Notes: a model not told the origin generated them from the sequence alone. A stretch of 64,000 nucleotides of DNA from Chlorokybus atmophyticus (GCA_009103225.1 RHPI01000810.1:975387-1039386), one strand, 5' to 3'; counted from the first letter of the stretch, positions 1-38,700 are shown. Numbers and translations: made by a program.

Positions 1-670
1 ACCTGTTCTTGGCCGCAATGATGTGGAGGAGGTGGGGTCGACAAAACTCCAAAGCTTCTTGCGGATCAGCACCAACTTCATCTTCAGCGACCATGAAGCG
101 TAGTTGTGCAGATCAAGGGACTCGATGGGCATCCTATCTGTGTCAGCCATTACTTGCTACACAATAGTACAACTCACCCTCTCCCCAAGAACACTCTACT
201 AGTAGGCACCTATGCTCAACACTTTCTCTCACTAGCACAAGCAATCACACAAGCGAGTGTGGGCCCATAACCTGTTGAGAACTAGTGATGCGCCTAGTGT
301 GTGTGTATTTGCCTCTTACATACAAGTGTGCACACACTAAGGACAAGTGCAACAAGCACGCCAACTATAAAGACAATGTGCGACCCACTGTATTAAGTAG
401 TATACAGTGTCTTATATACTATGCTACTAAGCACTAGTCAACTCTAGTCAACTCTGGTCAAAGTCAACACTAGTCAACATTAGTCAATGGTCAAAGTCAA
501 CGGTCAAAGTCAAAGTTGACCATGGTTGACCATAACTGCCGTAACTGCCGTAACTCCCGTAACTCTCGTAACTCTAGTAACTCCCGTAACTATGAAGGTT
601 AAGCTGATCGTACCGACTACATGTAGGCGCCGCCTATACATGTACTTTCAACAAGCTATAACATTTAACA
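1..670 (-). mobile_element. Gag-only copia-type LTR element, 5' part (gag N-terminus 1-150, leader, PBS 260-272, 5' LTR 273-670); rest lies outside the window
   Basis: Reverse complement of the same LTR/PBS/gag start (MADTDRMP) seen in the full-length copies. The LTR abuts copia integrase codons at 671, i.e. it is inserted into the integrase. Confidence 0.92.
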
Positions 671-1296
671 CACTGCACCTCACACCCCCGAGCAAAACGG
701 TGCTGCTGAGCGTCTCAACCGCACACTTGTAGAGCGTGTGCGTGTCATGCTTACAGATGCAAAGCCGAAGAAAGCTTTATGGGCTGAGGCATTTGTCACG
801 GCCAACTACATCCATAACAGGTCACCTACGGACAACAAAGCCAAGACCCCGTGGGAGTTGTTGCATGGTGAGGCGCCCAATGTTATGCACATGCGTGTGT
901 TTGGAGCCAAGGCATATCCGCACATCCCTAAGCACTTGAGGAGGAAGCTGGAGAATGTGAGGGAGACAGGCGTCTTTATAGGATATGAGCCCAACTCCAA
1001 GGCGTACAGGATCTTGCATGAGGACGGCAAGATTATGGTTTGAAGGGATGTTGTCTCCGACGAGAAGATGGTGGCAACAACATTGACAACACCTTCACCA
1101 ATTATGGACATTAACATTACCAATGAGCCGGAGGTCGTCGTCGCACCACTTGTCAATATGGAGGTCGCTGGTTATGCGCCACACCTCGAGGAGGAAGTGA
1201 CTGCACCTGTTGAGGAGCAGGAGAGGCGCTACCCTCTACGAACGAGAGCGCCACCACACTTCACCCAAAGGCTTCAGGCTATGAGCGCTGATATCA

Positions 1297-2296
1297 TTGA
1301 GGATAAAGAGCCAAGCACCTACCATGAGGCCATTAGCTCCGGATGCAGAGTTGTGGCATAAGGCCATGGATGAGGAGATTGCTTCGCTTCACGCCAACAA
1401 AACTTGGGCACTTGAGCAGGTTCCACAAGGTGTGAGGCATATACTTGTCAAATGGGTGTTCAAGATAAAGCGTAACGACAAGGGCAACGTTGAGCGCTAC
1501 AAGGCGCAACTTGTGGCAAAGGGATTCCTTCAACAGGAGGGAGTTGACTACAAGGAGATATTTGCACCTGCCAGCAAGCACACAACTTTCAGAGCATTGC
1601 TCGCTAAGGTTGCTGTGGAGGACTTGGAGCTGGATCACCTAGATGTGAAGACTGCCTTCCTCTATGGAGAGTTGGAGGAACAAATCTTCGTGCAGCAACC
1701 TCAAGGGTACGAAGAGGGAGACACAGGCAAGGCATGCTTGGTACATAAGGCTTTGTATGGGCTTAGACAGGCACCATGTGTCTGGCACATTCGACTTAGC
1801 AAAGAGCTAGAAAAGATGGGCGTACAGCAGTCTGCAGCAGACTCTGGGCTCTTCATTAGTGAAGACGGACAAGTCTGGCTCCTCGTGTATGTTGATGACA
1901 TTATCCCGGCATCTGCGGATATTGCTGCAATAACCCGAATTAAGGTGACACTGCAATCTGCGTTCGAGATTCGCGACCTTGGAGATGCACACTTGTTCCT
2001 CGACATAGTCATCACCAGGATCAAAGATGCACCATCAAGATCACACAGAAGCAGATGGTGCTGTACTTACTCAAGAAGTTCAAGGTACAGGATGCAAAGG
2101 GCAAGGCAACACCACTAAGTGTGGGAGTACAGTTACTTAAGGCACGGGACACTGCTTTGTACTTGACAAGACTGTCTACCCCTACGGTGAGCTAGTAGGA
2201 AGTCTCATCTACTTGTCCATTGCTACAAGATCTGACATCGCGCAAGCCGTGGGAGTCTTGGCGAGGTACATGTCAGCACCCATTATCAAGCACTGG
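1297..2296 (+). pseudogene. Copia reverse transcriptase (RVT_2-type), disrupted
   Basis: ORF 1297-2118 with YVDD motif; continues in another frame through LVGSLIYL...[19 protein letters not shown] up to the insertion point. Confidence 0.9.
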
Positions 2297-4712
2297 ACTC
2301 ACACACGAGTTATATGCGACACACAGCTCATGCCGGGGGGTTGTTAAATGTTATAGCTTGTTGAAAGTACATGTATAGGCGGCGCCTACATGTAGTCGGT
2401 ACGATCAGCTTAACCTTCATAGTTACGGGAGTTACGAGAGTTACGAGAGTTACGGGAGTTACGGCAGTTATGGTCAACCATGGTCAACTTTGACTTTGAC
2501 CATTGACTTTGACCATTGACTAGTGTTGACTATTGTTGACTTTGACCAGAGTTGACTAGAGTTGACTAGTACTTAGTAGCATAGTATATAAGACACTGTA
2601 TACTGCTTAATACAGTGGGTCGCACATTGTCTCTATAGTTGGCGTGCTTGCTGCACTTGTCCTTAGTGTGTGCACACTTGTATGTAGGAGGCAAATACAC
2701 ACACACTAGGCGCATCACTAGTTCTCAACACTCGAGAGTTGTGGGACACTTTTGTTGACGCCCTACGTGATGATTTTATCAATGAGCAACGGAAGGTACG
2801 TACACAATCTTGGGAATATATATATTTGTAATTTACATGATACTGCGTGCTTATGTCCATTATACATGTGCGCTATGTATCAGAGAGGAGAACTTGCCAT
2901 GCGCAATAATGGACGATGTGTTACATGCGGCACGTGATTTGCAAAAGCTCTGACGTGGTATTGACCGCAGAGCTTCACTCGACAAGTTTGATCTCGGCCA
3001 TCTTATACCTGATGGATTTGATGACGAATGATCCGGTTGCACAAGGGTCGCTATGGGTCGATAGAGCGGGCATCGCGCTGGCCCCCCGTAGATGCGGCCT
3101 GAGACTGCATAGGCGCGGTCTTGTAACTGGTATGCCCCGCACCGGATGCATAAGATCCAGAGTAGCGGGGGGTTTACTGGCCCCGCCCCTTGTTGGCAGT
3201 GTAGGCCACCTTCGCCTTGGGCTTGGGCTGCGCCGCAGCTGCCTCCTTGATTGCCTTCTTAAGGCGCTTTGCCTCTGCATCAACTGTAGTTAGAGGGTCT
3301 CTCGTGAGCTCCTCCACCATTTTCCAACTATGCTTGTTGGCCACTTCCACATGGTGGAACTGCGTGCACACCTCGCCCAATGCTGGTGCACAGAGCACAT
3401 GTGAGCAACACTGGTTGCGGCCAATCATGCAGAGGCTCAGAGCCATTGGTTTTAATGCCAGGCGCACCCGCATTGACATCACCATCTCCCACATGCAAAT
3501 GTAATGGCAAACCTGTTGTGCTTTTTTCCTTGCTATGAATAGTCATAGTGTGAATACAAAGGTGGACATGCAAGGGTGTTAAGTGCGGGCCCTCCCCCCC
3601 CTACCGGACTCGGGGGGAGGAGGGATGCGGAACAATGTATGTATATAGATGCCTCTACGTAAATGATAAGCCCGCACCTTCATAAGGCCGATGATGCACG
3701 CATGTGCATGTTCGCATGAGTAAAGTCCGCACCCTCATGCGTGTCCTATATGTGTGCTCGTGCAAAAGGCCATGCTCAACAAAGAGTGAGCCCACCTTTC
3801 ATGTTGTCTTTGCGGCCTTTGGCAAAGTGGGGATCCTCGAAGAGGTGAGAGGGCACACGGTCGAAGGAGGCCGCCGCCGAGGCAATGTAAGCCGCCACGT
3901 CGACGTGTTGCCGAGCCCGCTTTTTCATGTTCTCCTTCCAAGGGATCGCGGGATCGTCAAAGCGAGTGGCCAATGCCTCCGCACGAGAATGCGGTGTAGT
4001 GGAGTCGCCTTTGTCGCGGCGAAGGATGCTTACAAGTAGCGGGTGGTTGGGCTCAATGACGGGCTCATTATGAGGGATGACGGGCGCCTTCCCACGCCTA
4101 AGACGCATGTTTTCCGCCTCCAACTCCTCCAACCTCCTCGCCATGGCCTCCGTGGGTGTTATGAACGGGGTGGAAGCGTTGGAGAGCGGGCTTGCCTCCC
4201 TCTTTTTACGCTTGTAAGTGACGACGGGCGGGTCCTCATCATCCTCGTCCTCATCATCATCACCATCACCCTCCTTGTTCACCTCCTCTTCTCCCACCTC
4301 CACGGGGGGGCGCACCCCGTCTCTCCTCACTCGCCGCTCTTCTTTCCTCCTCTTCACTCAAGGTGTGGCAACGCGGACTTGTAGCCCGCGCCAACCTATT
4401 GGCGGCCAGCCTAGCCGCCTTGGCCGTGGCTTCCACGTCCTCTCCATCGCCATGGGCACTTCTTGACCGTGTGGTGGTCATAGAGGTCGACCGCCTATTC
4501 TTCCTCCTAACCACCCACGCCACCCTCGCCAAGGATGGCGCCGCCGCGCTAGGGTTTCAAGCGACTAGGTAAGGAGCTTGTGACTCACAACTCACATCTG
4601 GTGAGTGCTTGTGCCCCCAAGTGCCCAAGGCACTAGGGGCACAAGAGTCTTATAACTCATTAACGAGTTCTTGAGTTCATGGGCGCGCATTTCATGCGCT
4701 TCATGAACTCAT
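2297..4712 (-). mobile_element. Insertion in the copia RT, with a DIRS/tyrosine-recombinase-retroelement-like gag and no pol
   Basis: Copia RT reads HW(T) to the left and AAKGVFCYL to the right, so this is an insertion. Minus-strand peptide VEVANKHSWKMVEELTRDPLTTVDAEAKRLKKAIKEA resembles the IADK..GW..VEEY..D.LA.D.EDEKR..KA motif of DIRS/Ngaro/PAT-like Gag (recalled motif, not searched). Upstream acidic/basic ORFs at 3776-4532. Confidence 0.45.
2342..2730 (+). repeat. Solo LTR of the gag-only family
   Basis: TGTTAAATG...TTCTCAACA, no PBS after it and no PPT before it. Flanks GGGGT / CTCGA do not form a TSD. Confidence 0.92.
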
Positions 4713-5258
4713 ATGAAGGCGGCTAAAGGAGTTTTTTGCTACCTTGGCAGCATTGTGAATAAGGGTATCATCTTTGGAAAGACGAAAGACATCACATTAC
4801 ATGGCAACTGTGGTGCAGTCTATGCTGGAAACCTCGACACGAGAAAGTCTACCACAAGTTACACTTTTGTAATGGGAGGAGGCGTCGTTAGCTGGAACAG
4901 TCGACTACAACCAACTGTTGCTGCGTCCAGTACTGAGGCCAAGTACATGGCGGCTTCATCTGCGGCGAGGAAGGACTGTGGCTTCGCAAGTTTGATCACC
5001 GACCTTAGGCATGCAGCGAGCTGTGTCACCATTTTATGTGACAACCAAGGAGCACTCAAGCTGAGCATGCACCTCATCACATTTGCCAGGTCGAAGCATA
5101 TTGACATTATGCACCCTTTGGTAAGCGAGAAAGTTGCACGTGGGGAAGTGGAGTTCAAGTACTGCAGCACTCAGGACATGCTCGCTGATTGCATGACAAA
5201 ACCACTACCACCAACCAAGTTTCATACATGCTGCATCGAGCTAGGAGTTGAAGGTTAA
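4713..5258 (+). pseudogene. Copia RNase H domain
   Basis: 181-aa ORF with copia RNase H motifs, followed by stop, GCGTGGGAG and LTR start TGTTAAA at 5275. Confidence 0.88.
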
Positions 5259-5274
5259 GTTGCTTGCGTGGGAG

Positions 5275-5649
5275 TGTTAAAGGTCTCTATGTAGGTGGCG
5301 CCGTAATTAAACTTCTACGATCAACTTATCTTCGGGAGTTATGGTCAACGATCGTTGTGGGAATTACGGGAGTTATAGTCAACCTTAGTCAATGTTGACT
5401 TTGACCATTGACTTTGACTTTAACTAGTGTTGACTTTGACTAGAGTTGACTAGTGTTGACTAGTGTTGACTAGCACTCACTAGTGTGCTATATAAGACAC
5501 TGTCTGTTGTGTAATACAGTAAGATCCACTCTGCTCTATTGTCAGCGCCACACTTGTGCTTGTCGTTGTTGCTACTGTGCAATCTTAATAGTGCACTACA
5601 AAGCATCTACCAAAACTTACTTGTGAAGCGGGGATCATAATAGCTCACA
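5275..5649 (+). repeat. 3' LTR, family B (LTR of the pol-bearing copia)
   Basis: TG...CA after the PPT. Shares TGTTAAA start, GGCGCC motif, TTGACY array and TATATAAGACACTGT with the gag-only LTR but has a different 3' half. Second copy at 14508-14882. Confidence 0.85.
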
Positions 5650-5919
5650 ATGCTTCGTGGTAGTCCGTGCGAACGAAAGACATGCTTCATAACAAGCTTG
5701 CTGCCTCTGGTCCCGTGCCAAATCCAAAACACGGTGCTGAATGTACCACTTTGCTAATTTTGTTAGCAAATACGAGTATATGTTAAATGTTATAGCTTGT
5801 TGAAAGTACATGTATAGGCGGCGCCTACATGTAGTCGGTACAATCAGCTTAACCTTCATAGTTACGGGAGTTACGAGAGTTACGAGAGTTACGGGAGTTA
5901 CGAGAGTTACGAGAGTTAT

Positions 5920-6039
5920 GGTCAACCATGGTCAACTTTGACTTTGACCGTTGACTTTGACCATTGACTAATGTTGACTAGTGTTGACTTTGACCAGAGT
6001 TGACTAGAGTTGCCTAGTGCTTAGTAGCATAGTATATAA
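5920..6039 (+). promoter_or_regulatory. LTR U3 promoter: array of 11 TTGAC(C/T) (W-box) motifs at 5920-6005 plus TATA box TATATAA at 6033-6039 (representative copy)
   Basis: 9 forward TTGACY and 2 reverse GGTCAA counted directly. The same array is present in every complete LTR of the family. That it binds WRKY factors is inference. Confidence 0.6.
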
Positions 6040-6178
6040 GACACTGTATACTGCTTAATACAGTGGGTCGCACATTGTCTCTATAGTTGGCGTGCTTGTT
6101 GCACTTGTCCTTAGTGTGTGCACACTTGTATGTAAGAGGCAAATACACACACACTAGGCGCATCACTAGTTCTCAACA

Positions 6179-6191
6179 GGTTATGGGCCCA
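6179..6191 (+). other. Primer binding site GGTTATGGGCCCA, complementary to the anticodon arm of initiator tRNA-Met (half-molecule priming)
   Basis: Directly abuts the 5' LTR in all copies; same type of PBS as Drosophila copia, yeast Ty5 and Volvox Osser. Confidence 0.85.
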
Positions 6192-6300
6192 CACTCGCTT
6201 GTGTGATCGCTTGTGCTAGTGAGAGAAAGTGTTGAGCATAGGCGCCTACTAGTAGAGTGTTCTTGGGGAGAGGGTGAGTTGTACTATTGTGTAGCAAGTA

Positions 6301-7086
6301 ATGGCTAACACTGATAGGATGCCCATCGAGTCCCTTGATCTGCACAACTACGCTTCATGGTCGCTGAAGATGAAGTTGGTGCTGATCCGCAAGAAGCTTT
6401 GGAGTTTTGTCGACCCCACCTCCTCCACATCATTGCGGCCAAGAACAGGTGACACTGGTACCTGGACAGAGAACTCACAATCAGCTTTTGCGCTGATAGG
6501 CTTGCACGTCAAAGACTTCCATCTCCCTCTTATTGCGGATTGCAAGACTGGACGTGAGGCGTGGGAGGTCTTCGACACCCTCTTCAAGGCCAATAGCAAC
6601 TCGCGCAAGTTGCAGCTGAGACGCAAGCTGACACTTCTGAAGATGGAGCACAAAGAGCCAATCCAGAAGTACATCTCGCGTGCAAGGGAGCTTTGGCAAG
6701 ACCTTGCAGCAGTGGGCCACGATGTGAAGGAAGAGGAGGTGATGTGGGCAGTCTTAGCTGGCTTAGGAAAGAGCTTTGCTACGCTAGTGACTGTGTTGGA
6801 GTCCTCAGATGTGGTTTTGAAGTTTGCTGATGTAGTGCCTAAGCTGCTAGCTGTGGAAGGCAAGTTGGATGTTCAGGAGATAGAGAATGGTGGAGAACCT
6901 ATCGCACTTTCTGCCTCATCTTCTCAACACACACGAAACAGGAGCAAAGCAGGTGGTGGGAAGCCATCACGTGACAAAGAGTGTCACTACTGCAAGATGA
7001 AGGGCCACTTCATTCGCGAGTGCCAGAAGAGGATCCACGATGAGGCAACCAAGGGAGAGCACGCCACGATGGCGATTGCTTTCTAG
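6301..7086 (+). CDS. Retrotransposon Gag, 261 aa, intact (copia gag/UBN2-like core, CCHC knuckle CHYCKMKGHFIREC)
   Basis: ATG 122 bp after the LTR; NYASWSLKMKLVL..KKLW, ..EAWEVFDTLF, LRRKL..LKM, VLAGL..SF..LVTVLE motifs; ends AIAF-TAG. Confidence 0.93.
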   Translation: MANTDRMPIESLDLHNYASWSLKMKLVLIRKKLWSFVDPTSSTSLRPRTGDTGTWTENSQSAFALIGLHVKDFHLPLIADCKTGREAWEVFDTLFKANSNSRKLQLRRKLTLLKMEHKEPIQKYISRARELWQDLAAVGHDVKEEEVMWAVLAGLGKSFATLVTVLESSDVVLKFADVVPKLLAVEGKLDVQEIENGGEPIALSASSSQHTRNRSKAGGGKPSRDKECHYCKMKGHFIRECQKRIHDEATKGEHATMAIAF

Positions 7087-7724
7087 CATTGGTGAGGACC
7101 TCAAGGAGTTGCAGTGGATGGTGTTCGTCCGTCCTCTCCCACTGCAAGGGCGCGTGAAGGACATGCGTAGACGGAGGTCGCAGACACAAAGGTCTGTGAG
7201 AGTTACTGCTAGCCTATGAGTAGTTACTGGTGTTGAGCTGCATACACTAGAGGTTGCATTGCTGTGAGGTTGTTTTTTGGTAGCACACAGGTGTGCGGTA
7301 CTAGTTAGAACACTTCACTTGATTGGCATGCAAGGACTGAGTTGTATAGCTAGCTAACAGGAGATGGGAGGGGTGCTTCCTTGGTAGAAGGGTCTGATCA
7401 ACCCTTGCACGGACTACACTCTGGTACAGCATTGCTAAGGTAGAGAACTCATTGTAGTTTATAGCATAGTTTGCCATCGAGGGAGTCCTCGAAACCATCT
7501 GAGCAAGGTCAGGCGTGGCGTGGTGGAACCTGATGCGACAACTATGAGGAGGAAACAAGGAGTAATGGAACCTTGTAGTTCTGCTGGCAGCACAAGGAGA
7601 AAGATAGTGTCATGGAGACAAGCATCGAGTCCGTGGGAGCAACAGATCCGTGGGAGTGTTCAATGGAGTAAGTTAATGTGGGTAAGCTTGCGAGAAGATC
7701 TTGGAGTTCAAGGTCAAGCTGCTC

Positions 7725-7733
7725 GCGTGGGAG
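7725..7733 (+). other. Short polypurine-tract-like GCGTGGGAG before the 3' LTR
   Basis: Same sequence precedes every 3' LTR and the family B LTR at 5275. Confidence 0.75.
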
Positions 7734-9384
7734 TGTTAAATGTTATAGCTTGTTGAAAGTACATGTATAGGCGGCGCCTACATGTAGTCGGTACGATCAG
7801 CTTAACCTTCATTGTTACGGGAGTTACGGGAGTTACGAGAGTTATGGACAACCATGGTCAACTTTGACTTTGACCATTGACTTTGACCATTGACTAATGT
7901 TGACTAGTGTTGACTTTGACCAGAGTTGACTAGAGTTGACTAGTGCTTAGTAGCATAGTATATAAGACACTGTATACTGCTTAATACAGTGGGTCGCACA
8001 TTGTCTCTATAGTTGGCGTGCTTGCTGCACTTGTCCTTAGTGTGTGCACACTTGTATGTACGAGGCAAATACACACACACTAGGCGCATCACTAGTTCTC
8101 AACAGTATAGCGTGGTACCCTTTTGTTGTTTTCGTTAACCCCGTCATATAGTCCATAGTAACTTGCTCCCTCTTGGACAATGGCACGGGAAGAGGTGGCA
8201 GCAACCCACCTGGCTTTTGGTTGCTTGCTTTCACCCTTTAACATGCGTCGCATGACGCCACATAATTGCGTACAATACAATGCATCTCTTACAAGTCAAG
8301 GCGTTGCTTCAAGCTTGCTAACGTCCTCTCCACTCCTTGGTGGACAGCAACGGGTACGTCATGAGCTTCCTTTGAAAGTTGAACGCGTATATGTGCAACA
8401 TTGGGGATGTACAAGCGGCCATGATGCCAAGTAGGCTGTCTTGCTTTGTCTAATATCCACTTGTGTCGGTTGCTATGCTCTCTATGTCCCGCAACACTCT
8501 CCTACCTTCTGTGTCTACGCAATGCACTTGTCGGATCAGCTCAGCCAACTCCGGTTGCACTTAATCGAGTGCTTTGATCGCACTCAATTGGCTTAGTGCG
8601 TCGGCCACACTATTAGATGTACCAAGCTTATACTTGATATTAACATATAAAAGTTGAAACGACCACCGCGTTGGTATTCGGCTAAGATGTGGTTATTTGT
8701 AAGTACCTCAATGGGGAATGGTCTTTCTCCAGCACGAACCTTTCCCCTCAAGAAAGCATCGCCATTGTCACAGCGCCATTACTTGCGCCAATAAGTCCTT
8801 CTCGTGCACAGGGTAGTTCAGCTCTGCTCTAATCCATTTTTGACTAATGCGCGCTACAAGTTGAAGACCCATGCCTTGGTCTTGTTAAATGTTATAGCTT
8901 GTTGAAAGTACATGTATAGGCGGCGCCTACATGTAGTCGGTACGATCAGCTTAACCTTCATAGTTACGGGAGTTACGAGAGTCACGAGAGTTACGGCAGT
9001 TATGGTCAACCATGGTCAACTTTGACTTTGACCATTGACTTTGACCATTGACTAGTGTTGACTAGTGTTGACTTTGACCAGAGTTGACTAGAGTTGCCTA
9101 GTGCTTAGTAGCATAGTATATAAGACACTGTATACTGCTTAATACAGTGGGTCGCACATTGTCTCTATAGTTGGCGTGCTTGTTGCACTTGTCCTTAGTG
9201 TGTGCACACTTGTATGTAAGAGGCAAATACACACACACTAGGCGCATCACTAGTTCTCAACAGGTTATGGGCCCACACTCGCTTGTGTGATTGCTTGTGC
9301 TAGTGAGAGAAAGTGTTGAGCATAGGTGCCTACTAGTCGAGTATTCTTGGGGAGAGGGTGAGTTGTACTATTGTGTAGCAAGTA

Positions 9385-10173
9385 ATGGCTGATACAGATA
9401 GGATGCCCATCGAGTCCCTTGATCTGCACAACTACGCTTCATGGTCGCTGAAGATGAAGTTGGTGCTGATCCGCAAGAAGCTTTGGAGTTTTGTCGACCC
9501 CACCTCCTCCACATCATTGCGGCCAAGAACAGGTGACACTGGTACCTGGACAGAGAACTCACAATCAGCTTTTGCGCTGATAGGCTTGCACGTCAAAGAC
9601 TTCCATCTCCCTCTTATTGCGGATTGCAAGACTGGACGTGAGGCGTGGGAGGTCTTCGACACCCTCTTCAAGGCCAATAGCAATGCGCGCAAGTTGCAGC
9701 TGAGACGCAAGCTGACACTTTTGAAGATGGAGCACAACGAGCCAATCCAGAAGTACATCTCGCGTGCAAGGGAGCTTTGGCAAGACCTTGCAGCAGTGGG
9801 CCACGACGTGAAGGAAGAGGAGGTGATGTGGGCAGTCTTGGCTGGCTTAGGAAAGAGCTTTGCTACGTTAGTGACTGTGTTAGAGTCCTCAGATGTGGTT
9901 TTAAAGTTTGCTGATGTAGTGCCTAAGCTGCTAGCTGTGGAAGGCAAGTTTGATGTTCATGAGAATGGTGGAGAACCTATTGCACTTTCTGCCTCATCTT
10001 CTCAACACACACAAAGCAAGAGCAAAGCAGGTGGTGGGAAGCCATCACGTGACAAAGAGTGTCACTACTGCAAGATGAAAGGCCACTTTATTCGCGAGTG
10101 CCAGAAGAGGATCCACGATGAGGCAACCAAGGAGGAGCACGCCACGATGGCGATTGCTTTCCAGCATTGGTGA
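9385..10173 (+). CDS. Gag, 262 aa, intact (usual TAG changed to CAG, stops three codons later)
   Basis: Uninterrupted ORF near-identical to 6301-7086. Confidence 0.92.
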   Translation: MADTDRMPIESLDLHNYASWSLKMKLVLIRKKLWSFVDPTSSTSLRPRTGDTGTWTENSQSAFALIGLHVKDFHLPLIADCKTGREAWEVFDTLFKANSNARKLQLRRKLTLLKMEHNEPIQKYISRARELWQDLAAVGHDVKEEEVMWAVLAGLGKSFATLVTVLESSDVVLKFADVVPKLLAVEGKFDVHENGGEPIALSASSSQHTQSKSKAGGGKPSRDKECHYCKMKGHFIRECQKRIHDEATKEEHATMAIAFQHW

Positions 10174-10727
10174 GGACCTCAAGGAGTTGTAGTGGATGGT
10201 GTTCGTCCGTCCTCTCCCATTGCAAGGGCGCGTGAAGGACATGCGCAGACGGAGGTCGCAGACACAAAGGTCTGTGAGAGTTGCTGCTAGCCTATGAGTA
10301 GTTGCTGGTGTTGAGCTGCATACACTAGAGGTTGCATTGCTGTGGAGTTGTTTTTTGGTAGCACACAGGTGTGCGGTACTGGATAGAACACTTCAATTAA
10401 TTGGCATGCAAGGACTGAGTTGTGTAGCTAGCTAACAGGAGATGGGAGGGGTGCTTTCCTTGGTAGAAGGGTCTGATCAACCCTTGCACGGCCTACACTC
10501 TGGTACAGCATTGCTAAGGTAGAGAACTCATTGTAGTTTATAGCATAGTTTGCCATCGAGGGAGTCCTCGAAACCATCTGAGCAAGGTCAGGCGTGGCGT
10601 GGTGGAACCTGATGCGACAACTATGAGGAGGAAACAAGGAGTAATGGAACCTTGTAGTTCTGCTGGCAGCACGAGGAGAAAGATGGTGTCATGGAGACAA
10701 GCATCGAGTCCGTGGGAGCAACAGATC

Positions 10728-13074
10728 TGTTAAATGTTATAGCTTGTTGAAAGTACATGTATAGGCGGCGCCTACATGTAGTCGGTACGATCAGCTTAAC
10801 CTTCATAGTTACGGGAGTTACGAGAGTTAGGAGAGTTACGGGAGTTACGGGAGTTACGAGAGTTATGGTCAACCATGGTCAACTTTGACTTTGACCGTTG
10901 ACTTTGACCATTGACTAATGTTGACTAGTGTTGACTTTGACCAGAGTTGACTAGAGTTGACTAGTGCTTAGTAGCATAGTATATAAGACACTGTATACTG
11001 CTTAATACAGTGGGTCGCACATTGTCTCTATAGTTGGCGTGCTTGTTGCACTTGTCCTTAGTGTGTGCACACTTGTATGTAAGAGGCAAATACACACACA
11101 CTAGGCGCATCACTAGTTCTCAACAGGTTATGGGCCCACACTCGCTTGTGTGATCGCTTGTGCTAGTGAGAGAAAGTGTTGAGCATAGGCGCCTACTAGT
11201 AGAGTGTTTTTGGGGAGAGGGTGAGTTGTACTATTCTGTAGCAAGTAATGGCTGACACTGATAGGATGCCCATCGAGTCCCTTGATCTGCACAACTACGC
11301 TTCATGGTCGCTGGAGATGAAGTTGGTGCTGATCCGCAAGAAGCTTTGGAGTTTTGTCGACCCCACCTCCTCCACATCATTGCGGCCAAGAACAGGTGAC
11401 ACTGGTACCTGGACAGAGAACTCACAATCAGCTTTTGCGCTGATAGGCTTGCACGTCAAAGACTTCCATCTCCCTCTTATTGCGGATTGCAAGACTGGAC
11501 GTGAGGCGTGGGAGGTCTTCGACACCCTCTTCAAGGCCAATAGCAATGCGCGCAAGTTGCAGCTGAGACGCAAGCTGACACTTTTTAAGATGGAGCACAA
11601 CGAGCCAATCCAGAAGTACATCTCGCGTGCAAGGGAGCTTTGGCAAGACCTTGCAGCAGTGGGCCACGACGTGAAGGAAGAGGAGGTGATGTGGGCAGTC
11701 TTAGCTGGCTTAGGAAAGAGCTTTGCAACGCTAGTGACTGTGTTGGAGTCCTCAGATGTGGTTTTGAAGTTTGCTGATGTAGTGCCTAAGCTGCTAGCTG
11801 TGGAAGGCAAGTTGGATGTTCATGAGATAGAGAATGGTGGAGAACCTATCGCACTTTTTGCCTCATCTTCTCAACACACACGAAACAGGAGCAAAGCAGG
11901 TGGTGGGAAGCCATCACGTGACAAAGAGTGTCACTACTGCAAGATGAAGGGCCACTTCATTCGCGAGTGCCAAAAGAGGATCCACGATGAGGCAACCAAG
12001 GAGGAGCACGCCACGATGGCGATTGCTTTCTAGCATTGGTGAGGACCTCAAGGAGTTGCAGTGGATGGTGTTCGTCCGTCCTCTCCCACTGCAAGGGCGC
12101 GTGAAGGACATGCGCAGACGGAGGTCGTAGACACAAAGGTCTGTGAGAGTTACTGCTAGCCTATGAGTAGTTACTGGTGTTGAGCTGCATACACTAGAGG
12201 TTGCATTGCTGTGGAGTTGCTTTTTGGTAGCACACAGGTGTGCGGTACTGGATAGAACACTTCAATTGATTGGCATGCAAGGACTGAGTTGTATAGCTAG
12301 CTAACAGGAGATGGGAGGGGTGCTTTCCTTGGTAGAAGGGTCTGATCAACCCTTGCACGGCCTACACTCTGGTACAGCATTGCTAAGGTAGAGAACTCAG
12401 TGTAGTTTATAGCATAGTTTGCCATTTAGGGAGTCTTCGAAACCACTTGAGCAAGGTCAGGCGTGGCGTGGTGGAACCTAATGCGACAACTATGAGGAGG
12501 AAACAAGGAGTATTGAAATCTTGTAATGCTGGTGGCAGCATGAGGAGAAAGATGGTGTCATGGAGACAAGCATCGAGTCCGTGGGAGCAACAGATCCGTT
12601 GGAGTGTTCAATGGAGTAAGTTAATGTGGGTAAGCTTGCGAGAAGATCTTGGAGTTCAAGGTCAAGCTGCTCGCGTGGGAGTGTTAAATGTTATAGCTTG
12701 TTGAAAGTACATGTATAGGCGGCGCCTACATGTAGTCGGTACGATCAGCTTAACCTTCATAGTTACGGGAGTTACGAGAGTTACGAGAGTTACGGGAGTT
12801 ACGGCAGTTACGGCAGTTATGGTCAACCATGGTCAACTTTGACTTTGACCGTTGACTTTGACCATTGACTAATGTTGACTAGTGTTGACTTCGACCAGAG
12901 TTGACTAGAGTTGACTAGTGCTTAGTAGCATAGTATATAAGACACTGTATACTGCTTAATACAGTGGGTCGCACATCGTCTCTATAGTTGGCGTGCTTGT
13001 TGCACTTGTCCTTAGTGTGTGCACACTTGTATGTAATAATACACACACACTAGGCGCATCACTAGTTCTCAACA
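10728..13074 (+). mobile_element. Nested full-length gag-only element (LTRs 10728-11125, 12682-13074)
   Basis: TSD AGATC at 10723-10727 and 13075-13079 inside the 3' internal region of the outer copy. Confidence 0.95.
11248..12033 (+). CDS. Gag, 261 aa, intact
   Basis: Uninterrupted ORF, CCHC knuckle, AIAF-TAG end. Confidence 0.92.
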   Translation: MADTDRMPIESLDLHNYASWSLEMKLVLIRKKLWSFVDPTSSTSLRPRTGDTGTWTENSQSAFALIGLHVKDFHLPLIADCKTGREAWEVFDTLFKANSNARKLQLRRKLTLFKMEHNEPIQKYISRARELWQDLAAVGHDVKEEEVMWAVLAGLGKSFATLVTVLESSDVVLKFADVVPKLLAVEGKLDVHEIENGGEPIALFASSSQHTRNRSKAGGGKPSRDKECHYCKMKGHFIRECQKRIHDEATKEEHATMAIAF

Positions 13075-15145: not shown

Positions 15146-15480
15146 CATGCGTCGCACGACTAGGACATTGATGCTTGAAGCGACCACACTCGCCACAACG
15201 CCAACACTCCTTGCCGTTACCATAAGAGCCTTTCTGCACCAAAAGCTGTAGCTGCTCCTAATCCTTCTTCCCACCCTCTCTTTTGCAAGCGCTGCTCTCT
15301 TTGAAGAAGCCGTGATAATACGCCATCAAGTGTTAACTCCTCCGTGGCAGACTCCATGATAGTCACCACCACCTTGTACTCCTTTGGCAACCCGTACAAC
15401 ACAACCCACACCACTTTTTGCTCCTTTAGCTCGTGCCCAACACTCAACAAGTCCTTCTACAGCGCCTTTGCTCGCGCCAC
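15146..15480 (-). pseudogene. Gag fragment of a different copia family
   Basis: VGHELKEQKVVWVVLYGLPKEYKVVVTIMES...LSRLLQREQR, followed in another frame by CWRCGECGRFKHQC knuckle. Confidence 0.75.
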
Positions 15481-24860: not shown

Positions 24861-24870
24861 CCACTGCAGC

Positions 24871-27258: not shown

Positions 27259-29339
27259 GTCAAAGTTGACCATGGTTGACCATAACTGCCGTAACTCTCG
27301 TAACTATCGTAACCCCGGTAACCATAAAGGTTAAGCTGATCGTACCAACTACATGTAGGCGCCGCCTATACATGTACTTTCAACAAGCTATAACATTTAA
27401 CACTCCCACGCGAGCAGCTTGACCTTGAACTCCAAGTTCTTCTCGCAAGCTTACCCACATTAACTTACTCCATTGAACACTCCCACGGATCTGTTGCTCC
27501 CACGGACTTTATGCTTGTCTCCATGACACCATCTTTCTCCTCATGCTGCCACCAGGATTACAAGGTTCCAATACTCCTGGTTTCCTCCTCATAGTTGTCG
27601 CATCAGGTTCCACCACGCCACGCCTGACCTTGCTCAGGTGGTTTCGAGGACTCCCTCAATGGCAAACTATGCTATAAACTACACTGAGTTCTCTACCTTA
27701 GCAATGCTGAACCAGAGTGTAGGCCGTGCAAGGGTTGATCAGACCCTTCTACCAAGGAAAGCACCCCTCTCATCTCCTGTTAGCTAGCTATACAACTCAG
27801 TCCTTGCATGCCAATCAATTGAAGTGTTCTATCCAGTACCGCACACCTGTGTGCTACCAAAAAACAACTCCACAGCAATGCAACCTCTAGTGTATGCAGC
27901 TCAACACCAGCAACTACTCATAGGCTAGCAGTAACTCTCACAGACCTTTGTGTCTGCGACCTCCGTCTACGCATGTCCTTCACGCGCCCTTGCAATGGGA
28001 GAGGACGGACGAACACCATCCACTGCAACTCCTTGAGGTCCTCACCAATGCTAGAAAGCAATCGCCAGCGTGGCGTGCTCATCCTTGGTTGCCTCATCGT
28101 GGATCCTCTTCTGGCACTCGCGAATGAAGTGGCCCTTCATCTTGCAGTAGTGACACTCTTTGTCACGTGATGGCTTCCCACCACCTGCTTTGCTCCTGCT
28201 TCGTGTGTGTTGAGAAGATGAGGCAGAAAGTGCGATAGGTTCTCCACCATTCTCTATCTCCTGAACATCCAACTTGCCTTCCACAGCTAGCAGCTTAGGC
28301 ACTACATCAGCAAACTTCAAAACCACATCTGAGGACTCCAACACAGTCACTAGCGTAGCAAAGCTCTTTCCTAAGCCAGCTAAGACTGCCCACATCACCT
28401 CCTCTTCCTTCACATCGTGGCCCACTGCTGCAAGGTTTTGCCAAAGCTACCTTGCACGTGAGATGTACTTCTGTATTGGCTCGTTGTGCTCCATCTTCAG
28501 AAGTGTCAGCTTGCGTCTCAGCTGCAACTTGCGCGAGTTGCTGTTGGCCTTGAAGAGGGTGTCGAAGACCTCCCACGCCTCACGTCCAGTCTTGCAATCC
28601 GCAATGAGAGGGAGATGGAAGTCTTTGACGTGCAAGCCTATCAGCGCAAAAGCTGATTGTGAGTTCTCTGTCCAGGTACTAGTGTCACCTGTTCTTGGCC
28701 GCAATGATGTGGAGGAGGTGGGGTCGACAAAACTCCAGAGCTTCTTGCGGATCAGCACCAACTTCATCTTCAGCGACCATGAAGCGTAATTGTGCAGATC
28801 AAGGGACTCGATGGGCATCCTATCTGTGTCAGCCATTGCTTGCTACACAATAGTACAACTCACCCTTTCCCCAAGAACACTCTACTAGTAGGCGCCTATG
28901 CTCAACACTTTCTCTCACTAGCACAAGCAATCACACAAGCGAGTGTGGGCCCATAACCTGTTGAGAACTAGTGATGCGCCTAGTGTGTGTATATTTGCCT
29001 CTTACATACAAGTGTGCACACATTAAGGACAAGTGCAGCAAGCACGCCAACTATAGAGACAATGTGCGACCCACTGTATTAAGCAGTATACAGTGTCTTA
29101 CATACTATGCTACTAAGCACTGGTCAACTCTGGTCAACTCTGGTCAAAGTCAACACTAGTTAACACTGGTCAATGGTCAAAGTCAGCGGTCAAAGTCAAA
29201 GTTGACCATGGTTGACCATAACTGCCGTAACTCCCGTAACTCTCGTAACCCCCGGTAACCATAAAGGTTAAGGTGATCGTACCAACTACATGTAGGCGCC
29301 GCCTATACATGTACTTTCAACAAGCTATAACATTTAACA
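27259..29339 (-). mobile_element. Gag-only copy with partial 3' LTR (27259-27402), gag 28051-28836 with one nonsense codon, 5' LTR 28959-29339
   Basis: ORFs 28447-28836 and 28051-28425 are in frame, separated by GAG>TAG. Confidence 0.9.
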
Positions 29340-33200: not shown

Positions 33201-33457
33201 CTTGGCCAACAGGGCCCGAACTTGGAGGGCGGGATCAAGAATGCCTAGCCCACCCGCATCTTTGGGAAGGCACGTAGTCTCTCAGCTAACCCGGCCTTGC
33301 TTGGCCGGAGATGCCCCATTAGTTGAAGAGCTAAAAAGAAGCGAGGTGCAAGCACGCTGCAGAGCATCAAGAGCACGCTGAGAGGGAAGCGCAATCGCCG
33401 CAATCTACCAGAGGCAGGTGTTGAGAACTAGTGATGCGCCTAGTGTGTGTGTATTTG

Positions 33458-35786
33458 TGTTAGATGTTATAGCTTGTTGAAAGCACATGTATAGGCGGCG
33501 CCTACATGTAGTTGGTACGATCAGCTTAACCTTCATAGTTACGGGAGTTACGAGAGTTACGAGAGTTACGGGAGTTACGGCAGTTATGGTCAACCATGGT
33601 CAACTTTGACTTTGACCATTGACTTTGACCATTGACTAGTGTTGACTAGTGTTGACTTTGACCAGAGTTGACTAGAGTTGACTAGTACTTAGTAGCATAG
33701 TATATAAGACACTGTATACTGCTTAATACAGTGGGTCGCACATTGTCTCTATAGTTGGCGTGCTTGCTGCACTTGTCCTTAGTGTGTGCACACTTGTATG
33801 TAGGAGGCAAATACTTACACACTAGGCGCATCACTAGTTCTCAACAGGTTATGGGCCCACACTCGCTTGTGTGATCGCTTGTGCTAGTGAGAAAAAGTGT
33901 TGAGCATAGGCGCCTACTAGTAGAGTGTTCTTGGGGAGAGGGTGAGTTGTACTATTGTGTAGCAAGCAATGGCTGACACAAATAGGATGCCCATCGAGTC
34001 CCTTGATCTGCACAACTACGCTTCATGGTCGCTGAAGATGAAGTTGGTGCTGATCCGCAAGAAGCTTTGGAGTTTTGTCGACCCCACCTCCTCCACATCA
34101 TTGCGGCCAAGAACAGGTGACACTGGTACCTGGACAGAGAACTCACAATCAGCTTTTGCGCTGATAGGCTTGCACGTCAAAGACTTCCATCTCCCTCTTA
34201 TTGCGGATTGCAAGACTGGACGTGAGGCGTGGGAGGTCTTCGACACCCTCTTCAAGGCCAATAGCAACTCGCGCAAGTTGCAGCTGAGACGCAAGCTGAC
34301 ACTTCTGAAGATGGAGCACAACGAGCCAATACAGAAGTACATCTCGCGTGCAAGGGAGCTTTGGCAAAACCTTGCAGCAGTGGGCCACGACGTGAAGGAA
34401 GAGGAGGTGATGTGGGCAGTCTTAGCTGGCTTAGGAAAGAGCTTTGCTACGCTAGTGACTGTGTTGGAGTCCTCAGATGTGGTTTTGAAGTTTGCTGATG
34501 TAGTGCCTAAGCTGCTAGCTGTGGAAGGCAAGTTGGATGTTCAGGAGATAGAGAATGGTGGAGAACCTATCGCACTTTCTGCCTCATCTTCTCAACACAC
34601 ACGAAGCAGGAGCAAAGCAGGTGGTGGGAAGCCATCACGTGACAAAGAGTGTCACTACTGCAAGATGAAGGGCCACTTCATTCGCGAGTGCCAGAAGAGG
34701 ATCCACGATGAGGCAACCAAGGATGAGCACGCCACGCTGGCGATTGCTTTCTAGCATTGGTGAGGACCTCAAGGAGTTGCAGTGGATGGTGTTCGTCCGT
34801 CCTCTCCCATTGCAAGGGCGCGTGAAGGACATGCGTAGACGGAGGTCACAAACACAAAGGTCTGTGAGAGTTACTGCTAGCCTATGAGTAGTTGCTGGTG
34901 TTGAGCTGCATACACTAGAGGTTGCATTGCTGTGGAGTTGTTTTTGGTAGCACACAGGTGTGCGGTACTGGATAGAACACTTCAATTGATTAGCATGCAA
35001 GGACTGAGTTGTATAGCAAGCTAACAGGAGATGGGAGGGGTGCTTTCCTTGGTAAAAGGGTCTGATCAACCCTTGCACGGCCTACACTCTGGTATAGCAT
35101 TGCTAAGGTAGAGAACTCAATGTAGTTTATAGCATAGTTTGCCATTGAGGGAGTCTCTGAAACCACCTGAGCAAGGTCAGGCGTGGCGTGGTGGAACCTG
35201 ATGCGACAACTATGAGGAGGAAACAAGGAGTATTGGAACCTTGTAGTTGTGCTGGCAGCACGAGGAGAAGGATGGTGTCATGGAGACAAGCTTCAAGTCC
35301 GTGGGAGCAACACATCTGTGTGAGTGTTCAATGGAGTAAGTTAATGTGGGTAAGCTTGCAAGAAGAACTTGGAGTTCAAGGTCAAGCTGCGTGGGAGTGT
35401 TAGATGTTATAGCTTGTTGAAAGCACATGTATAGGCGGCGCCTACATGTAGTTGGTACGATCAGCTTAACCTTCATAGTTACGGGAGTTACGAGAGTTAC
35501 GAGAGTTACGGGAGTTACGGCAGTTATGGTCAACTATGGTCAACTTTGACTTTGACCATTGACTTTGACCATTGACTAGTGTTGACTAGTGTTGACTTTG
35601 ACCAGAGTTGACTAGAGTTGACTGGTACTTAGTGGCATAGTATATAAGACACTGTATACTGCTTAATACAGTGGGTCGCACATTGTCTCTATAGTTGGCG
35701 TGCTTGCTGCACTTGTCCTTAGTGTGTGCACACTTGTATGTAGGAGGCAAATACTTACACACTAGGCGCATCACTAGTTCTCAACA
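33458..35786 (+). mobile_element. Young full-length gag-only element nested in the 3' LTR of the previous copy (LTRs 33458-33846, 35398-35786)
   Basis: TSD ATTTG at 33453-33457 and 35787-35791; both LTRs share the private TGTTAGATG start and differ at about 3 sites. Confidence 0.95.
33969..34754 (+). CDS. Gag, 261 aa, intact
   Basis: Uninterrupted ORF with CCHC knuckle. Confidence 0.92.
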   Translation: MADTNRMPIESLDLHNYASWSLKMKLVLIRKKLWSFVDPTSSTSLRPRTGDTGTWTENSQSAFALIGLHVKDFHLPLIADCKTGREAWEVFDTLFKANSNSRKLQLRRKLTLLKMEHNEPIQKYISRARELWQNLAAVGHDVKEEEVMWAVLAGLGKSFATLVTVLESSDVVLKFADVVPKLLAVEGKLDVQEIENGGEPIALSASSSQHTRSRSKAGGGKPSRDKECHYCKMKGHFIRECQKRIHDEATKDEHATLAIAF

Positions 35787-38700
35787 ATTTGCCTCTTACA
35801 TACAAGTGTGCACACACCAAGGACAAGTGCACCAAGCACGCCAACTATAGAGACAATGTGCGACCCACTGTGTTAAGCAGTATACAGTGTCTTATATACT
35901 ATGCTACTAAGCGCTAGTCAACTCTGGTCAAAGTCAACACTAGTCAACACTGGTCAATGGTCAAAGTCAACGGTCAAAGTAAAAGTTGACCATGGTTGAC
36001 CATAACTGCCGTAACTGCCGTAACTCTCCTAACTCTCGTAACTCTCGTAACTATAAAGATTAAGCTAATCGTACCAACTACATGTAGGCGCCACCTAGAC
36101 ATGTACTTTCGACAAGCTATAACATTTAACACTCCCACGCGAGCATCTTGACCTTGAACTCCAAGTTCTTCTCGCAAGCTTACCCACCTTACCTTACTCC
36201 ATTGAACACTCCCACGAATATGTTGCTCCCACGGACTTGATGCTTGTCTCCATGACACCATCCTTCTCCTCATGCTGCCAAAGGTTCCAATACTCCTTGA
36301 ACTCCTCACAAATGCTAGAAAGCAACTGCCACCGTGGCATGCTCCTCCTTGGTTGCCTCATCGTGGATCCTCTTCTGGCACTTGCGAATGAAGTGGCCCT
36401 TCATCTTTCAGTAGTGACACTCTTTGTCACGTGATGGCTTCCCACCACCTGCTTTGCTCCTGCTTCGTGTGTGTTGAGAAAATAAGGCAGCAAGTGCGAT
36501 AGGTTCTCCACTATATCTTTCGAACATCCAACTTGCCTTCCACAGCTAGCAGGCTTAGGCACTACATCAGCAAAACCACATCTGAGAACTACAACACAGT
36601 CACTAGCGTAGCAAAGCTCTTTCCTAAACCAGCTAAGACTGCCCACATTACCTCCTCTTCCTTCACATCGTGGCCCACTGCTACAAGGTCTTGCCAAAGC
36701 TCCCTTGCACGCGAGATGTACTTCTGGATTGGCTCTTTGTGCTCCATCTTCAGAAGTGTCAGCTTGCGTCTCAGCTGCAGCTTGCGCGAGTTGCTATTGG
36801 CCTTGAAGAGGGTGTCGAAGACCTCCCACGCCTCACGTCTAGTCTTGCAATCCGCAATAAGAGGGAGATGGAAGTCTTTAACGTGCAAGCCTATCAGCGC
36901 AAAAGCTGATTGTGAGTTCTCGATCCAGGTTTCAACGTCACCTGTTCTTGGCCGCAATTATGTGGAAGAGGTGGGGTCGACAAAACTCCAGGACTTCTTG
37001 CGGATCAGCACCAACTTCATCTTCAGCGACCATGAAGCGTAGTTGTGCAGATCAAGGGACTCGATGGGCATCCTATCTGTGTCAGCCGTTACTTGTTACA
37101 CAATAGTACAACTCACCCTCTTCCCAAGAACACTATACTAGTAGGTGCCTATGCTCAACACTTTCTCTCACTAGCACAAGCAATCACACAAGCGAGTGTG
37201 GGCCCATAACCTGTTGAGAACTAGTGATGCGCCTAGTGTGTGTATATTTGCCTCTTACATACAAGTGTGCACACATTAAGGACAAGTGCAGCAAGCACGC
37301 CAACTATAGAGACAATGTGCGACCCACTGTATTAAGCAGTATACAGTGTCTTACATACTATGCTACTAAGCACTGGTCAACTCTGGTCAACTCTGGTCAA
37401 AGTCAACACTAGTTAACACTGGTCAATGGTCAAAGTCAGTGGTCAAAGTCAAAGTTGACCATGGTTGACCATGACTGCCGTAACTGCCGTAACTCTCCTA
37501 ACTCTTGTAACTCCCGTAACTATAAAGGTTAAGCTGATCGTACCAATTACATGTAGGCGCCACCTATACATGTACTTTCAACAAGCTATAACATTTAACA
37601 GCAGGCAAGTATGGATTGGTTTACAACCACTGTTCTACCCATGATACACAGGTAGTAGCGGGACCATAGTTGCAACTGGCCTTGGATTTTCTTCACGACT
37701 GCTGCAGGGAGACCTATAGCGGCACCCGTAGCATAACATAGCAGCATCCCTATGTGCTAGCGCAGAGGCCCCAGCGCAGAGGAGGGGGGGAGCGGTGTGC
37801 AAGACTCAACATGATGCCTACCGACTTGCGATATTCAAGAAGAGAGTCCGAAGCAATAGTCCGCCATGATGCTTGTAAAATTCAATAACTGCACCAATCA
37901 TCGCAATGAGGATGGCCATGTCATCAAAAAAGGCATATCATCAACGCTCCCCCACATCTTTCATGTCGCATGCAGCACCCTCCTATATATCATCATCGGA
38001 GGGGAGAAGGCGGAGACCCATAAGAAAGGAAAAGGGACGTAGCATCTAGCCCAACGCTTCTGATGCAAGATTGAAGACAGAGTATGGCACCACTCAAGCG
38101 GAGGGGGGAGTGAGATTCTTCGTGATGCCCCCTTTGACCTGCCCGAGCAATGTGGAGCTGCAGCTATAGTGTAGCGTCTGCAGAACTTGAGGCATTAACG
38201 GGCGCAGTGGAGACATCCTTCATAAAATGTACCACCCAAACATCCAATGCGAAGGGGTTCTGTTGAGAGCTGAAAAGCGAGGAAACTTCATTCCATCAGA
38301 CCCACGAGGCCACCACCATTCCGCCCATCATGGTGCGCGGCTGACACCCGTGCTCCAGTGCATCTTCACGCTACAACAGCAGCGCGACCCCGGCAGAGCG
38401 AACGGCTGAGGGTGGGAAGGATGCATGCGCGTCACACCCAACCACAAGCACGAGCTCGCATATCGCAGCAGCAAGGAGTGGAAAAGCACCGTGGGCTGCT
38501 TGCCAAGAGATGCATTCCGAGCACACGAGGACGGAGGGTGTAACGGGAGCAATAATAATCAGGGTATTATTGCTACCTACATAACACATTCTGTATGAAT
38601 AAGTATATAATATATGCTTATTTATACCTCTTTTCTACGGTTCCTCGCTGAAAGGCTTGTCATAGGCGGTGTGGGTGTTGGGTAGAGGATTGAAGGGGCA

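Follow-up and report, generated by a model that had tools for sequence, protein, structure and literature searches.

Long terminal repeat (LTR) retrotransposons that carry gag and lack pol were defined as the TR-GAG class by Chaparro et al. 2015 (PMC4350172), with members in angiosperms and, in the brown alga Ectocarpus, four families. A copia-type TR-GAG, AT5TE33540 of ATCOPIA63, was directly seen to transpose in Arabidopsis ddm1 (PMC8704663), and copia elements as a rule produce a subgenomic RNA with gag only, through splicing that bypasses the protease (PMC5580714). Here we describe a 64,000-bp stretch of DNA from Chlorokybus atmophyticus (GCA_009103225.1 RHPI01000810.1:975387-1039386; hereafter the window), which contains repeated copies of a 2.3-kb satellite element with two LTRs, a single gag open reading frame (ORF) and no pol. 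With a probability of roughly 0.82, the satellite belongs to the TR-GAGs, as a non-autonomous family of LTR retrotransposons of the Ty1/copia type. A first-pass annotation, made from the sequence alone, had proposed such an algal equivalent of the TR-GAGs. The equivalence held for all features published for the class, and the algal host was confirmed by an ORF at 55055-56707 on the minus strand, which matched a gene model of Chlorokybus atmophyticus (EukProt jgi/Chlat1/584/Chrsp103S00003) with 100% identity. Its view that TR-GAGs were known from flowering plants only was overstated, given the four families in Ectocarpus (PMC4350172).

Self-comparison and motif mapping of the window gave a unit of 2,324 bp, represented by the reference copy at 5781-8104 on the plus strand. 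The 5' LTR of this copy (5781-6178) starts with TGTTAAATG and ends with TTCTCAACA, and it is followed immediately by the primer-binding site (PBS) GGTTATGGGCCC(AC) at 6179-6190, a leader of 110 nt, an uninterrupted gag ORF of 261 aa (6301-7086), a non-coding stretch of 647 bp (7087-7733) with the polypurine tract (PPT) GCGTGGGAG at its end (7725-7733), and the 3' LTR (7734-8104). The satellite LTRs were about 370-400 bp long (371-398 bp) with TG...CA ends, and the full copies measured 2,291-2,347 bp, well within the ceiling of 4 kb for TR-GAGs. The two LTRs, PBS, PPT and 5-bp target site duplications (TSDs) by which the class is recognised (PMC4350172) were all present. Two extra copies of GTGGGAG were seen 77-95 bp upstream of the true PPT (window 7630-7670, and likewise in other copies), one of them followed by TGTTCAATG in a mimic of the PPT/LTR junction (GTGGGAG-TGTTCAATG); they may stem from an old junction or provide a further site of plus-strand priming, and a satellite nested at 10728 landed between the two.

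The satellite Gag contained the Retrotran_gag_2 domain (Pfam PF14223, E=1.5e-31) and DUF4219, together with a CCHC zinc knuckle of the form CHYC...H....C. Its closest database relatives were the Gag or Gag-Pol proteins of copia elements, with 37-47% identity. The protease (DSGAS) of the related Gag-Pol proteins starts 20-40 residues past the knuckle, and the satellite ORF ends about 20 residues past it. A copia-type Gag (UBN2/Retrotran_gag_2) with a CCHC knuckle agrees with membership of Ty1/copia, whereas the protease-integrase-reverse transcriptase (RT)-RNase H order of pol is missing from the satellite, which has no pol; it is a derivative of the Ty1/copia (Pseudoviridae) lineage and not an autonomous member. 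Seven copies also had an open antisense frame of 171 codons within gag (6348-6863, minus strand), listed with a TTG start under the bacterial code; in all likelihood it is a by-product of gag codon usage.

Like Coffea TR-GAG1/2 and AT5TE33540 of ATCOPIA63, the satellite is shorter than 4 kb and has a PBS, a PPT and 5-bp TSDs, a single ORF for a copia-type Gag (PF14223/UBN2 with zinc knuckle) without RT or integrase, and multiple conserved copies with different TSDs in regions rich in transposable elements. It differs from the described TR-GAGs in its host, an early-diverging streptophyte alga, in a sequence unrelated to the described families, in a Gag of 261 aa instead of 433-562 aa, in a PBS matching the anticodon arm of initiator tRNA-Met (the half-tRNA type) instead of tRNA-Leu as in Coffea TR-GAG1, and in that purifying selection on gag was measured. 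The gag-only RNAs of copia elements (shGAG of Arabidopsis EVD, and Drosophila copia with removal of a ~3-kb intron; PMC5580714) resemble the satellite as a separate Gag RNA that stops just before the protease and gives an excess of Gag over Pol. Those RNAs are isoforms of autonomous elements, whereas the gag-only form of the satellite is fixed in DNA, has its own LTRs and transposes. BARE-2, mobilised by BARE-1 in barley, and the LARD and TRIM elements share with the satellite a non-autonomous state and mobilisation in trans by a related autonomous partner with common cis signals, which for the satellite is proposed. BARE-2 is its opposite in coding content, as it lacks Gag and keeps pol, and LARDs and TRIMs have no ORF.

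The 647-bp stretch contained no detectable pol. A tblastn search of 7087-7733 with 44 Gag-Pol proteins, run with E up to 10 and a small word size, gave a best match of E=0.014, and the weak matches were at chance level and scattered across frames and strands. The same 44 queries recovered the pol of a neighbouring copia at E ~1e-121 and its C-terminal part at 1e-39. Comparison of the stretch with this copia at the DNA level showed a match confined to 47 bp around the PPT/LTR junction, where 33 of the 37 bases preceding the 3' LTR matched and covered the final pol codons, stop and PPT of the copia. The remainder may be a hypervariable pol linker or the 3' untranslated region of the parent. Similarity was thus limited to the GAG domain with no RT or other pol motif, as required of a TR-GAG, and the satellite encodes no protease, integrase or reverse transcriptase. 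An apparent homology extending past the gag stop was rejected as read-through of stops in a low-complexity linker. RNA folding found no convincing structure in the leader (z=-0.5) or the 647 nt (z=-1.9; 20 shuffles), and neither an Rfam family nor a tRNA gene was found in the window.

The pol-less unit itself has transposed repeatedly, with 5-bp target duplications and often into other transposons, including its own copies. Within this window alone, 19 satellite LTR starts and 11 gag copies were counted, where the TR-GAG definition asks for at least two. Four gag copies were intact (at 6301, 9385, 11248 and 33969), two were truncated (1-150 at the window edge, and 26345-26748), and five had one to six stops or frameshifts. 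Five insertions were flanked by perfect TSDs, each with a chance of 1/1024. The reference satellite (5776-8109 with TSD) has GTATA at 5776-5780 and 8105-8109, and the distance K between its two LTRs was 0.025. Downstream of it on the plus strand, an outer satellite with TSD GGTCT (8878-13549, made of 8883-10727 and 13075-13544; K=0.0026) interrupts a gypsy-type RNase H relic (Pfam RT_RNaseH_2, E=6e-14) exactly at the element end; its gag (9385-10173) is intact, with an in-frame deletion of 6 bp and a stop shifted by 3 codons. Two satellites were found nested in satellites: one on the plus strand in the internal region of the GGTCT copy (10723-13079, element 10728-13074; TSD AGATC; intact gag 11248-12033; K=0.018), and one, also on the plus strand (33453-35791, element 33458-35786; TSD ATTTG; intact gag 33969-34754; K=0.0078), in the LTR of an older satellite on the minus strand. 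The latter (33414-37605, made of 33419-33457 and 35787-37600; TSD GCAGG; K=0.055) had an internal deletion of 446 bp and a degenerate gag. The four intact gags were those of the four full-length elements with TSDs whose LTR pairs had diverged least.

In addition to the TSDs, a filled/empty pair was present in the window. The GTATA insertion sits in a copia LTR, and an uninterrupted second LTR of this kind (14509-15160) serves as the empty-site paralogue, with a single target copy, GTATT, at 15009-15013 and flanks that are about 95-97% identical on both sides. Seven copies aligned collinearly from end to end of the 2.3 kb, the 647-bp stretch included, and this shared layout implies one pol-less ancestor instead of independent deletions. 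The common architecture, the five TSDs and the empty site therefore identify the pol-less form as the mobile unit. The first-pass annotation had described a 2.3-kb element with a 261-aa Gag ORF and about 650 bp devoid of recognisable pol, 11 gag copies (4 intact), about 19 LTR segments, the same five TSDs and a mobile pol-less form, and each of these observations was reproduced. It had also called the family recently active. The five LTR pairs differed by 0.26-5.5% with no identical pair, so recent activity stands in relative terms only: the mismatch counts are too small for conversion into years, and the assembly is possibly short-read and polished.

Our results also showed that purifying selection acted on gag in the pol-less lineage while the family diversified. 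Since every copy compared lacks pol, the constraint would belong to this lineage, unless gag variants entered it by recombination from an unseen autonomous relative. Pairwise dN/dS among the main-family gag copies, a check that had been suggested with the original description, was 0.10-0.62. The mean pairwise divergence of gag was 2.4% at first, 0.8% at second and 4.8% at third codon positions, compared with 2.9-5.4% in the leader and non-coding stretch and ~4% in the LTRs. Variable sites in gag were distributed 16/7/32 over the three codon positions (chi-square p=1.6e-4); position 2 was less variable than the non-coding stretch (2.7% vs 10.2%, p=2.8e-4), and position 3 was not. Relative to a majority-rule reference of the gag alignment, used solely for counting substitutions, 32 changes were synonymous and 42 nonsynonymous, against an expectation of 22% synonymous (p=5e-5); when 30% was assumed to account for transition bias, p was 0.01. 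Since gag was kept by selection, the spread of the satellite probably depends on its own Gag. The selection fits a satellite that supplies its own capsid, and preferential packaging of its own RNA (cis-packaging) might be inferred further.

The PBS motif occurred 11 times in the window, each time directly after a 5' LTR, where chance alone would give 0.19. The first 13 nt of the motif, GGTTATGGGCCCA, are found mid-way in published antisense probes to human tRNAiMet, and the PBS therefore appears, as judged on the human probes, complementary to the anticodon arm of initiator tRNA-Met and not to its 3' end. This PBS is of the kind found in the half-tRNA-primed copia group, as had been proposed; the cleaved 5' half of the tRNA would be the actual primer, to go by the PBS. 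A half-tRNA primer of this kind is used by Drosophila copia, which resembles the satellite in a PBS placed directly after the LTR and complementary to internal initiator tRNA-Met, in a copia-type Gag and in TG...CA ends. Volvox Osser, yeast Ty5 and Physarum Tp1 are further half-tRNA-primed copia elements. These copias are autonomous with gag-pol, unlike the satellite, which has no pol. Two metagenome contigs (L001:1006-1028 and L002:8338-8360) held copias whose LTR end and PBS are identical to those of the satellite over 23 bases. Their Gag proteins are only 31-34% identical to the satellite Gag, so that the 23-mer alone is held in common; L002 has a full gag-pol, and no tRNA was found in L001 or L002. 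Conservation of the LTR end and the half-tRNA PBS thus reaches far beyond the satellite family.

A candidate helper lies in the same locus. A dead Ty1/copia pol extends on the plus strand from 669 or earlier to 5258, with the C-terminal part of integrase, RT and RNase H at 669-2299 and 4707-5258 and a PPT at 5267-5275. Its domains were recognised in Pfam (RVT_2, E=5.6e-57; SH3_retrovirus, the SH3-like C-terminal domain of integrase, 1.7e-19), and its pol also by tblastn. The 3' LTR of this copia, about 650 bp long and termed LTR-B, spans 5276-8256 on the plus strand as 5276-5780 and 8110-8256, being interrupted by the reference satellite. The second LTR-B copy, also on the plus strand, is the one at 14509-15160 that holds the empty site, and is preceded by a PPT at 14500-14508. 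These boundaries replace the interval of 671-5649 given for the copia by the first-pass annotation. LTR-B and the satellite LTR have in common the PPT GCGTGGGAG with the TGTTAAA junction, a GGCGCC box, the TTGACY array, TATATAAGACACTGT and the start of R, among which are all four motifs that had been claimed as shared. With both strands counted, the array has 11-12 TTGACY cores in LTR-B and likewise 11-12 in the satellite LTR. The homology covers ~330 bp of U3 and early R at roughly 70-75% identity, and beyond it the two are unrelated, with different U5 ends and lengths of ~650 bp and ~390 bp. Among the cis signals expected of a helper, the PPT and the first 7 LTR bases were therefore identical, U3 was homologous and the U5 end was different; the PBS and gag of the copia lie off the window. 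The TGTT...AACA ends are generic for copias, and Tca5 has them too, so that kinship is really attested by the shared promoter and PPT region. The copia of the window is thus a related lineage and a candidate helper only, and a copia akin to the LTR-B element is probably the helper.

TTGACY is the core of the W-box, which is bound by WRKY factors. The U3 regions of the satellite LTR (5920-6010 in the reference copy) and of LTR-B (14610-14700 and 5378-5470) contained 10-12 TTGACY cores per ~95 bp with both strands counted, 9-10 of them forward and 1-2 reverse, located 20-110 bp ahead of the TATA box. This array was preceded by 2-6 copies of GTTACGRGA, the number varying among LTRs. The whole window had 264 TTGACY sites against ~62 expected, and nearly all of the excess fell in LTRs. 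A shared U3 would co-express the satellite and its helper, as such a parasite needs.

From these features we propose the following course of events. Transcription of the satellite would be driven by the LTR U3, with its W-box-like TTGACY array near the TATA box, and the RNA would be translated into Gag, which would form particles. An autonomous copia expressed at the same time would supply these particles with Pol (protease, integrase and RT/RNase H). For reverse transcription, the 5' half of initiator tRNA-Met would act as primer at the PBS, with priming also from the tract GCGTGGGAG, and integrase would insert the satellite DNA via the TGTT...AACA ends. The own Gag would be needed for the spread of the satellite, and preferential packaging of its own RNA would explain the upkeep of gag. 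Unequal recombination and a segmental duplication at the DNA level later enlarged the family. In its strongest version, the satellite would be an obligate parasite that builds its own capsid, with a Gag preserved by selection for the preferential packaging of its own RNA. One type of U3 enhancer with 10-12 W-box-like (WRKY-type) sites, common to satellite and helper, would activate both at the same time, and both the TR-GAG strategy and W-box LTR promoters would be older than land plants. This version is tentative, and we consider it rather doubtful as a whole.

Not every copy arose by an independent insertion. A tandem LTR-int-LTR-int-LTR array on the minus strand (16454-20682), with LTRs at 16454-16824, 18374-18744 and 20294-20682, had no TSD (flanks AGTAC and GCAGG), and both of its gag copies were broken and carried a common premature stop. 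This array points to unequal recombination or tandem duplication. The segment 19369-21865 (strand not assigned) was 96.4% identical to 36292-38781, covering the element end and 1.18 kb of flank with the same GCAGG junction, and the two represent a single insertion that was later duplicated at the DNA level. The duplicated flank ends exactly at an assembly gap (21866-21888), and the sequence after the gap does not match what follows the paralogue; continuity across 21866-21888 is therefore unconfirmed, and a wrong scaffold join or a duplication boundary hidden in the gap may be present. An ORF at 21753-22214 was rejected as meaningless since it reads across this gap. Neither the gap nor the single Ns (15818, 38828 and 40140) overlap with the elements, ORFs and TSDs on which the conclusions are based.

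Several points weigh against the reading of the satellite as a TR-GAG served by a copia helper. The candidate helper copy is dead, and its U5 end and LTR length are unlike those of the satellite. No autonomous partner with the satellite LTR, PBS or gag was found in the window or in the protein, metagenome and viral-contig scans. The order of nesting conflicts with the LTR ages, as the nested copy at 10728 (K=0.018, 7 mismatches) would be older than its host copy (K=0.0026, 1 mismatch), which is at odds with a simple clock. The counts are small, and the discrepancy might stem from gene conversion or from errors in polishing. The selection signal in gag could have been imported by recombination with an unseen autonomous relative; one copy has a recombinant appearance. 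The published Chlorokybus assembly was made from short reads (SOAPdenovo with k=85, GapCloser and Pilon), and if the window is part of it, as the single Ns suggest, copy-specific variants and long-range order may be partly chimeric. The junctions and matching TSDs are local features and are robust to such doubts.

The alternative that deserves most attention concerns the helper, which may lie outside the LTR-B lineage, being either an unseen autonomous parent with the satellite-type LTR (LTR-A), PBS and gag or an unrelated promiscuous copia. We regard this as a serious possibility that falls somewhat short of even odds. It is favoured by the loss of homology after early R (650 bp in LTR-B vs 390 bp), by which the U5 end that integrase recognises differs, by the generic nature of TGTT...AACA, seen in Tca5 and in the unrelated copias of L001 and L002 with their exact LTR-end and PBS 23-mer, and by the many published non-autonomous families of sugar beet without a traceable partner. 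An LTR-A parent is disfavoured by the window, which has no pol-bearing LTR-A element despite 19 LTR-A starts, and a helper outside the LTR-B lineage by its clear homology with the LTR-B copia in U3, in the PPT and in the 37 bp that precede the LTR. As to the origin of the gag-only structure, reverse transcription of a spliced gag-only subgenomic RNA, in place of random internal deletion, would account for an ORF that ends ~20 residues past the knuckle, just before the protease of its relatives and in the region of copia splice donors, and for the match to the copia pol end in only the last ~37 bp before the LTR. However, the 647 bp match no pol C-terminus in any frame, and the neighbouring copia has ~17 bp from pol stop to LTR, so that a simple donor-acceptor join leaves the 647 bp unexplained; we consider this origin unlikely.

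Selection on gag is also compatible with a role in trans, in which Gag is kept for its action on other elements, as a Gag donor or as a dominant-negative restriction factor comparable to the Gag-derived inhibitors of Ty1 and murine retroviruses. The Gag-donor idea has been raised for TR-GAGs (PMC4350172) and for "super-splicer" copias. The many, nested, structurally polymorphic and often broken copies resemble a parasite family and not a host gene, the complete set of cis signals (PBS, PPT and LTR ends) is conserved, and the TSDs show that the elements themselves move, which together make a role in trans quite improbable. Multiplication mainly by DNA-level duplication and unequal crossing-over instead of retrotransposition could explain the tandem array without TSD, the 96.4% duplicate with its shared junction and the lack of a TSD at an LTR at 2342-2730, but the five different perfect TSDs, the empty site, the occurrence in both orientations and the nesting at unrelated targets refute it as the sole process and leave it a very small chance. 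Least credible of all is an artefact of short-read de Bruijn assembly that skipped pol. The assembly method, the single Ns and gap in the region, one chimeric-looking copy and one inverted junction could suggest it, but seven collinear copies with copy-specific differences all have the non-pol 647 bp, and matching TSDs pair both ends of five elements across 2.3 kb. A TR-GAG-type satellite mobilised by a related copia, which remains our preferred reading, agrees with the kinship on which the first-pass annotation had based its suggestion of the copia as a plausible helper: the relationship was upheld by U3, the PPT and the last ~37 bp, while this particular copy is dead and has a different U5 end.

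Gag-only non-autonomous LTR retrotransposons are extended by this family to the streptophyte algal grade. New in this study are the host, the purifying selection on gag in a pol-less lineage and the finding that some copies came from DNA-level duplication or unequal recombination, and the most useful of these is the selection signal. Measured inside a lineage in which all copies lack pol, it provides evidence that is usually missing for the TR-GAG class. It speaks for a functional Gag in such elements and against a decaying remnant, which bears on the choice between a self-packaging parasite and a Gag donor. The known picture of how LTR retrotransposons work is unchanged.

The left 37.6 kb of the window (47-50% G+C) form a nested transposon island, in which the satellite family makes up ~21 kb, or roughly half, as estimated by adding the mapped segments. 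The family is therefore relevant to the annotation of the Chlorokybus genome, as it fills about half of a 37-kb repeat island. The closest Gag in a HMMER scan of 1.8 billion representative proteins was 47% identical, and the best match in a word-indexed protein search was 41% identical; the clusters of the top matches consisted of environmental sequences with none from Chlorokybus, and scans of metagenome and viral contigs with Gag gave no relative. Neither this family nor TR-GAGs of streptophyte algae were described in the searched literature or sequence collections.

Further satellite segments were mapped in the island. A partial satellite on the minus strand (1-670) runs off the left edge, with its 5' LTR at 273-670, PBS at 261-272 and the first 150 nt of gag at 150-1, and it cuts the 5' side of the LTR-B copia inside integrase. 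This copia is also split by a 2.4-kb insert and carries frameshifts and stops. The insert (2300-4706) opens with a plus-strand satellite-type LTR at 2342-2730, which lies inside the RNase H region of the copia without a TSD (GGGGT vs CTCGA), and continues with ~2 kb of unique sequence, in which ORFs of up to 193 aa gave no Pfam match; the insert might stem from a rearrangement or represent another non-autonomous element. A copy of a diverged subfamily on the plus strand (24871-26346) was 81-92% identical to the reference up to position ~6900 and 96-100% identical thereafter, with one stop in gag and a truncation past reference position 7308. This copy meets an inverted fragment of the main family (26345-27258) head to head, and is either a recombinant, formed by template switching or gene conversion, or an assembly chimera. 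That fragment, which runs from the 5' LTR to mid-gag, is one of two satellite copies on the minus strand at 26345-29339; the other, at 27253-29339, has one stop in gag and lacks most of its 3' LTR, in which the fragment sits.

Relics of other retrotransposons accompany the satellites. The gypsy-type relic interrupted by the GGTCT satellite is a decayed Ty3/gypsy pol on the minus strand at 13480-14071, probably continued at 8257-8882 on the same strand, with a YLDN-type RT motif and the RT_RNaseH_2 domain. A foreign copia gag fragment with stops (15139-15495, minus strand) adjoins the end of the second LTR-B copy and is 41% identical to residues 120-197 of the satellite Gag. To the right of the island, the window (~38-64 kb, 54-62% G+C) is genic, and an A+T-rich block (42001-44000, 40.6% G+C) was found within this part beside a short local repeat at 44146-44412.

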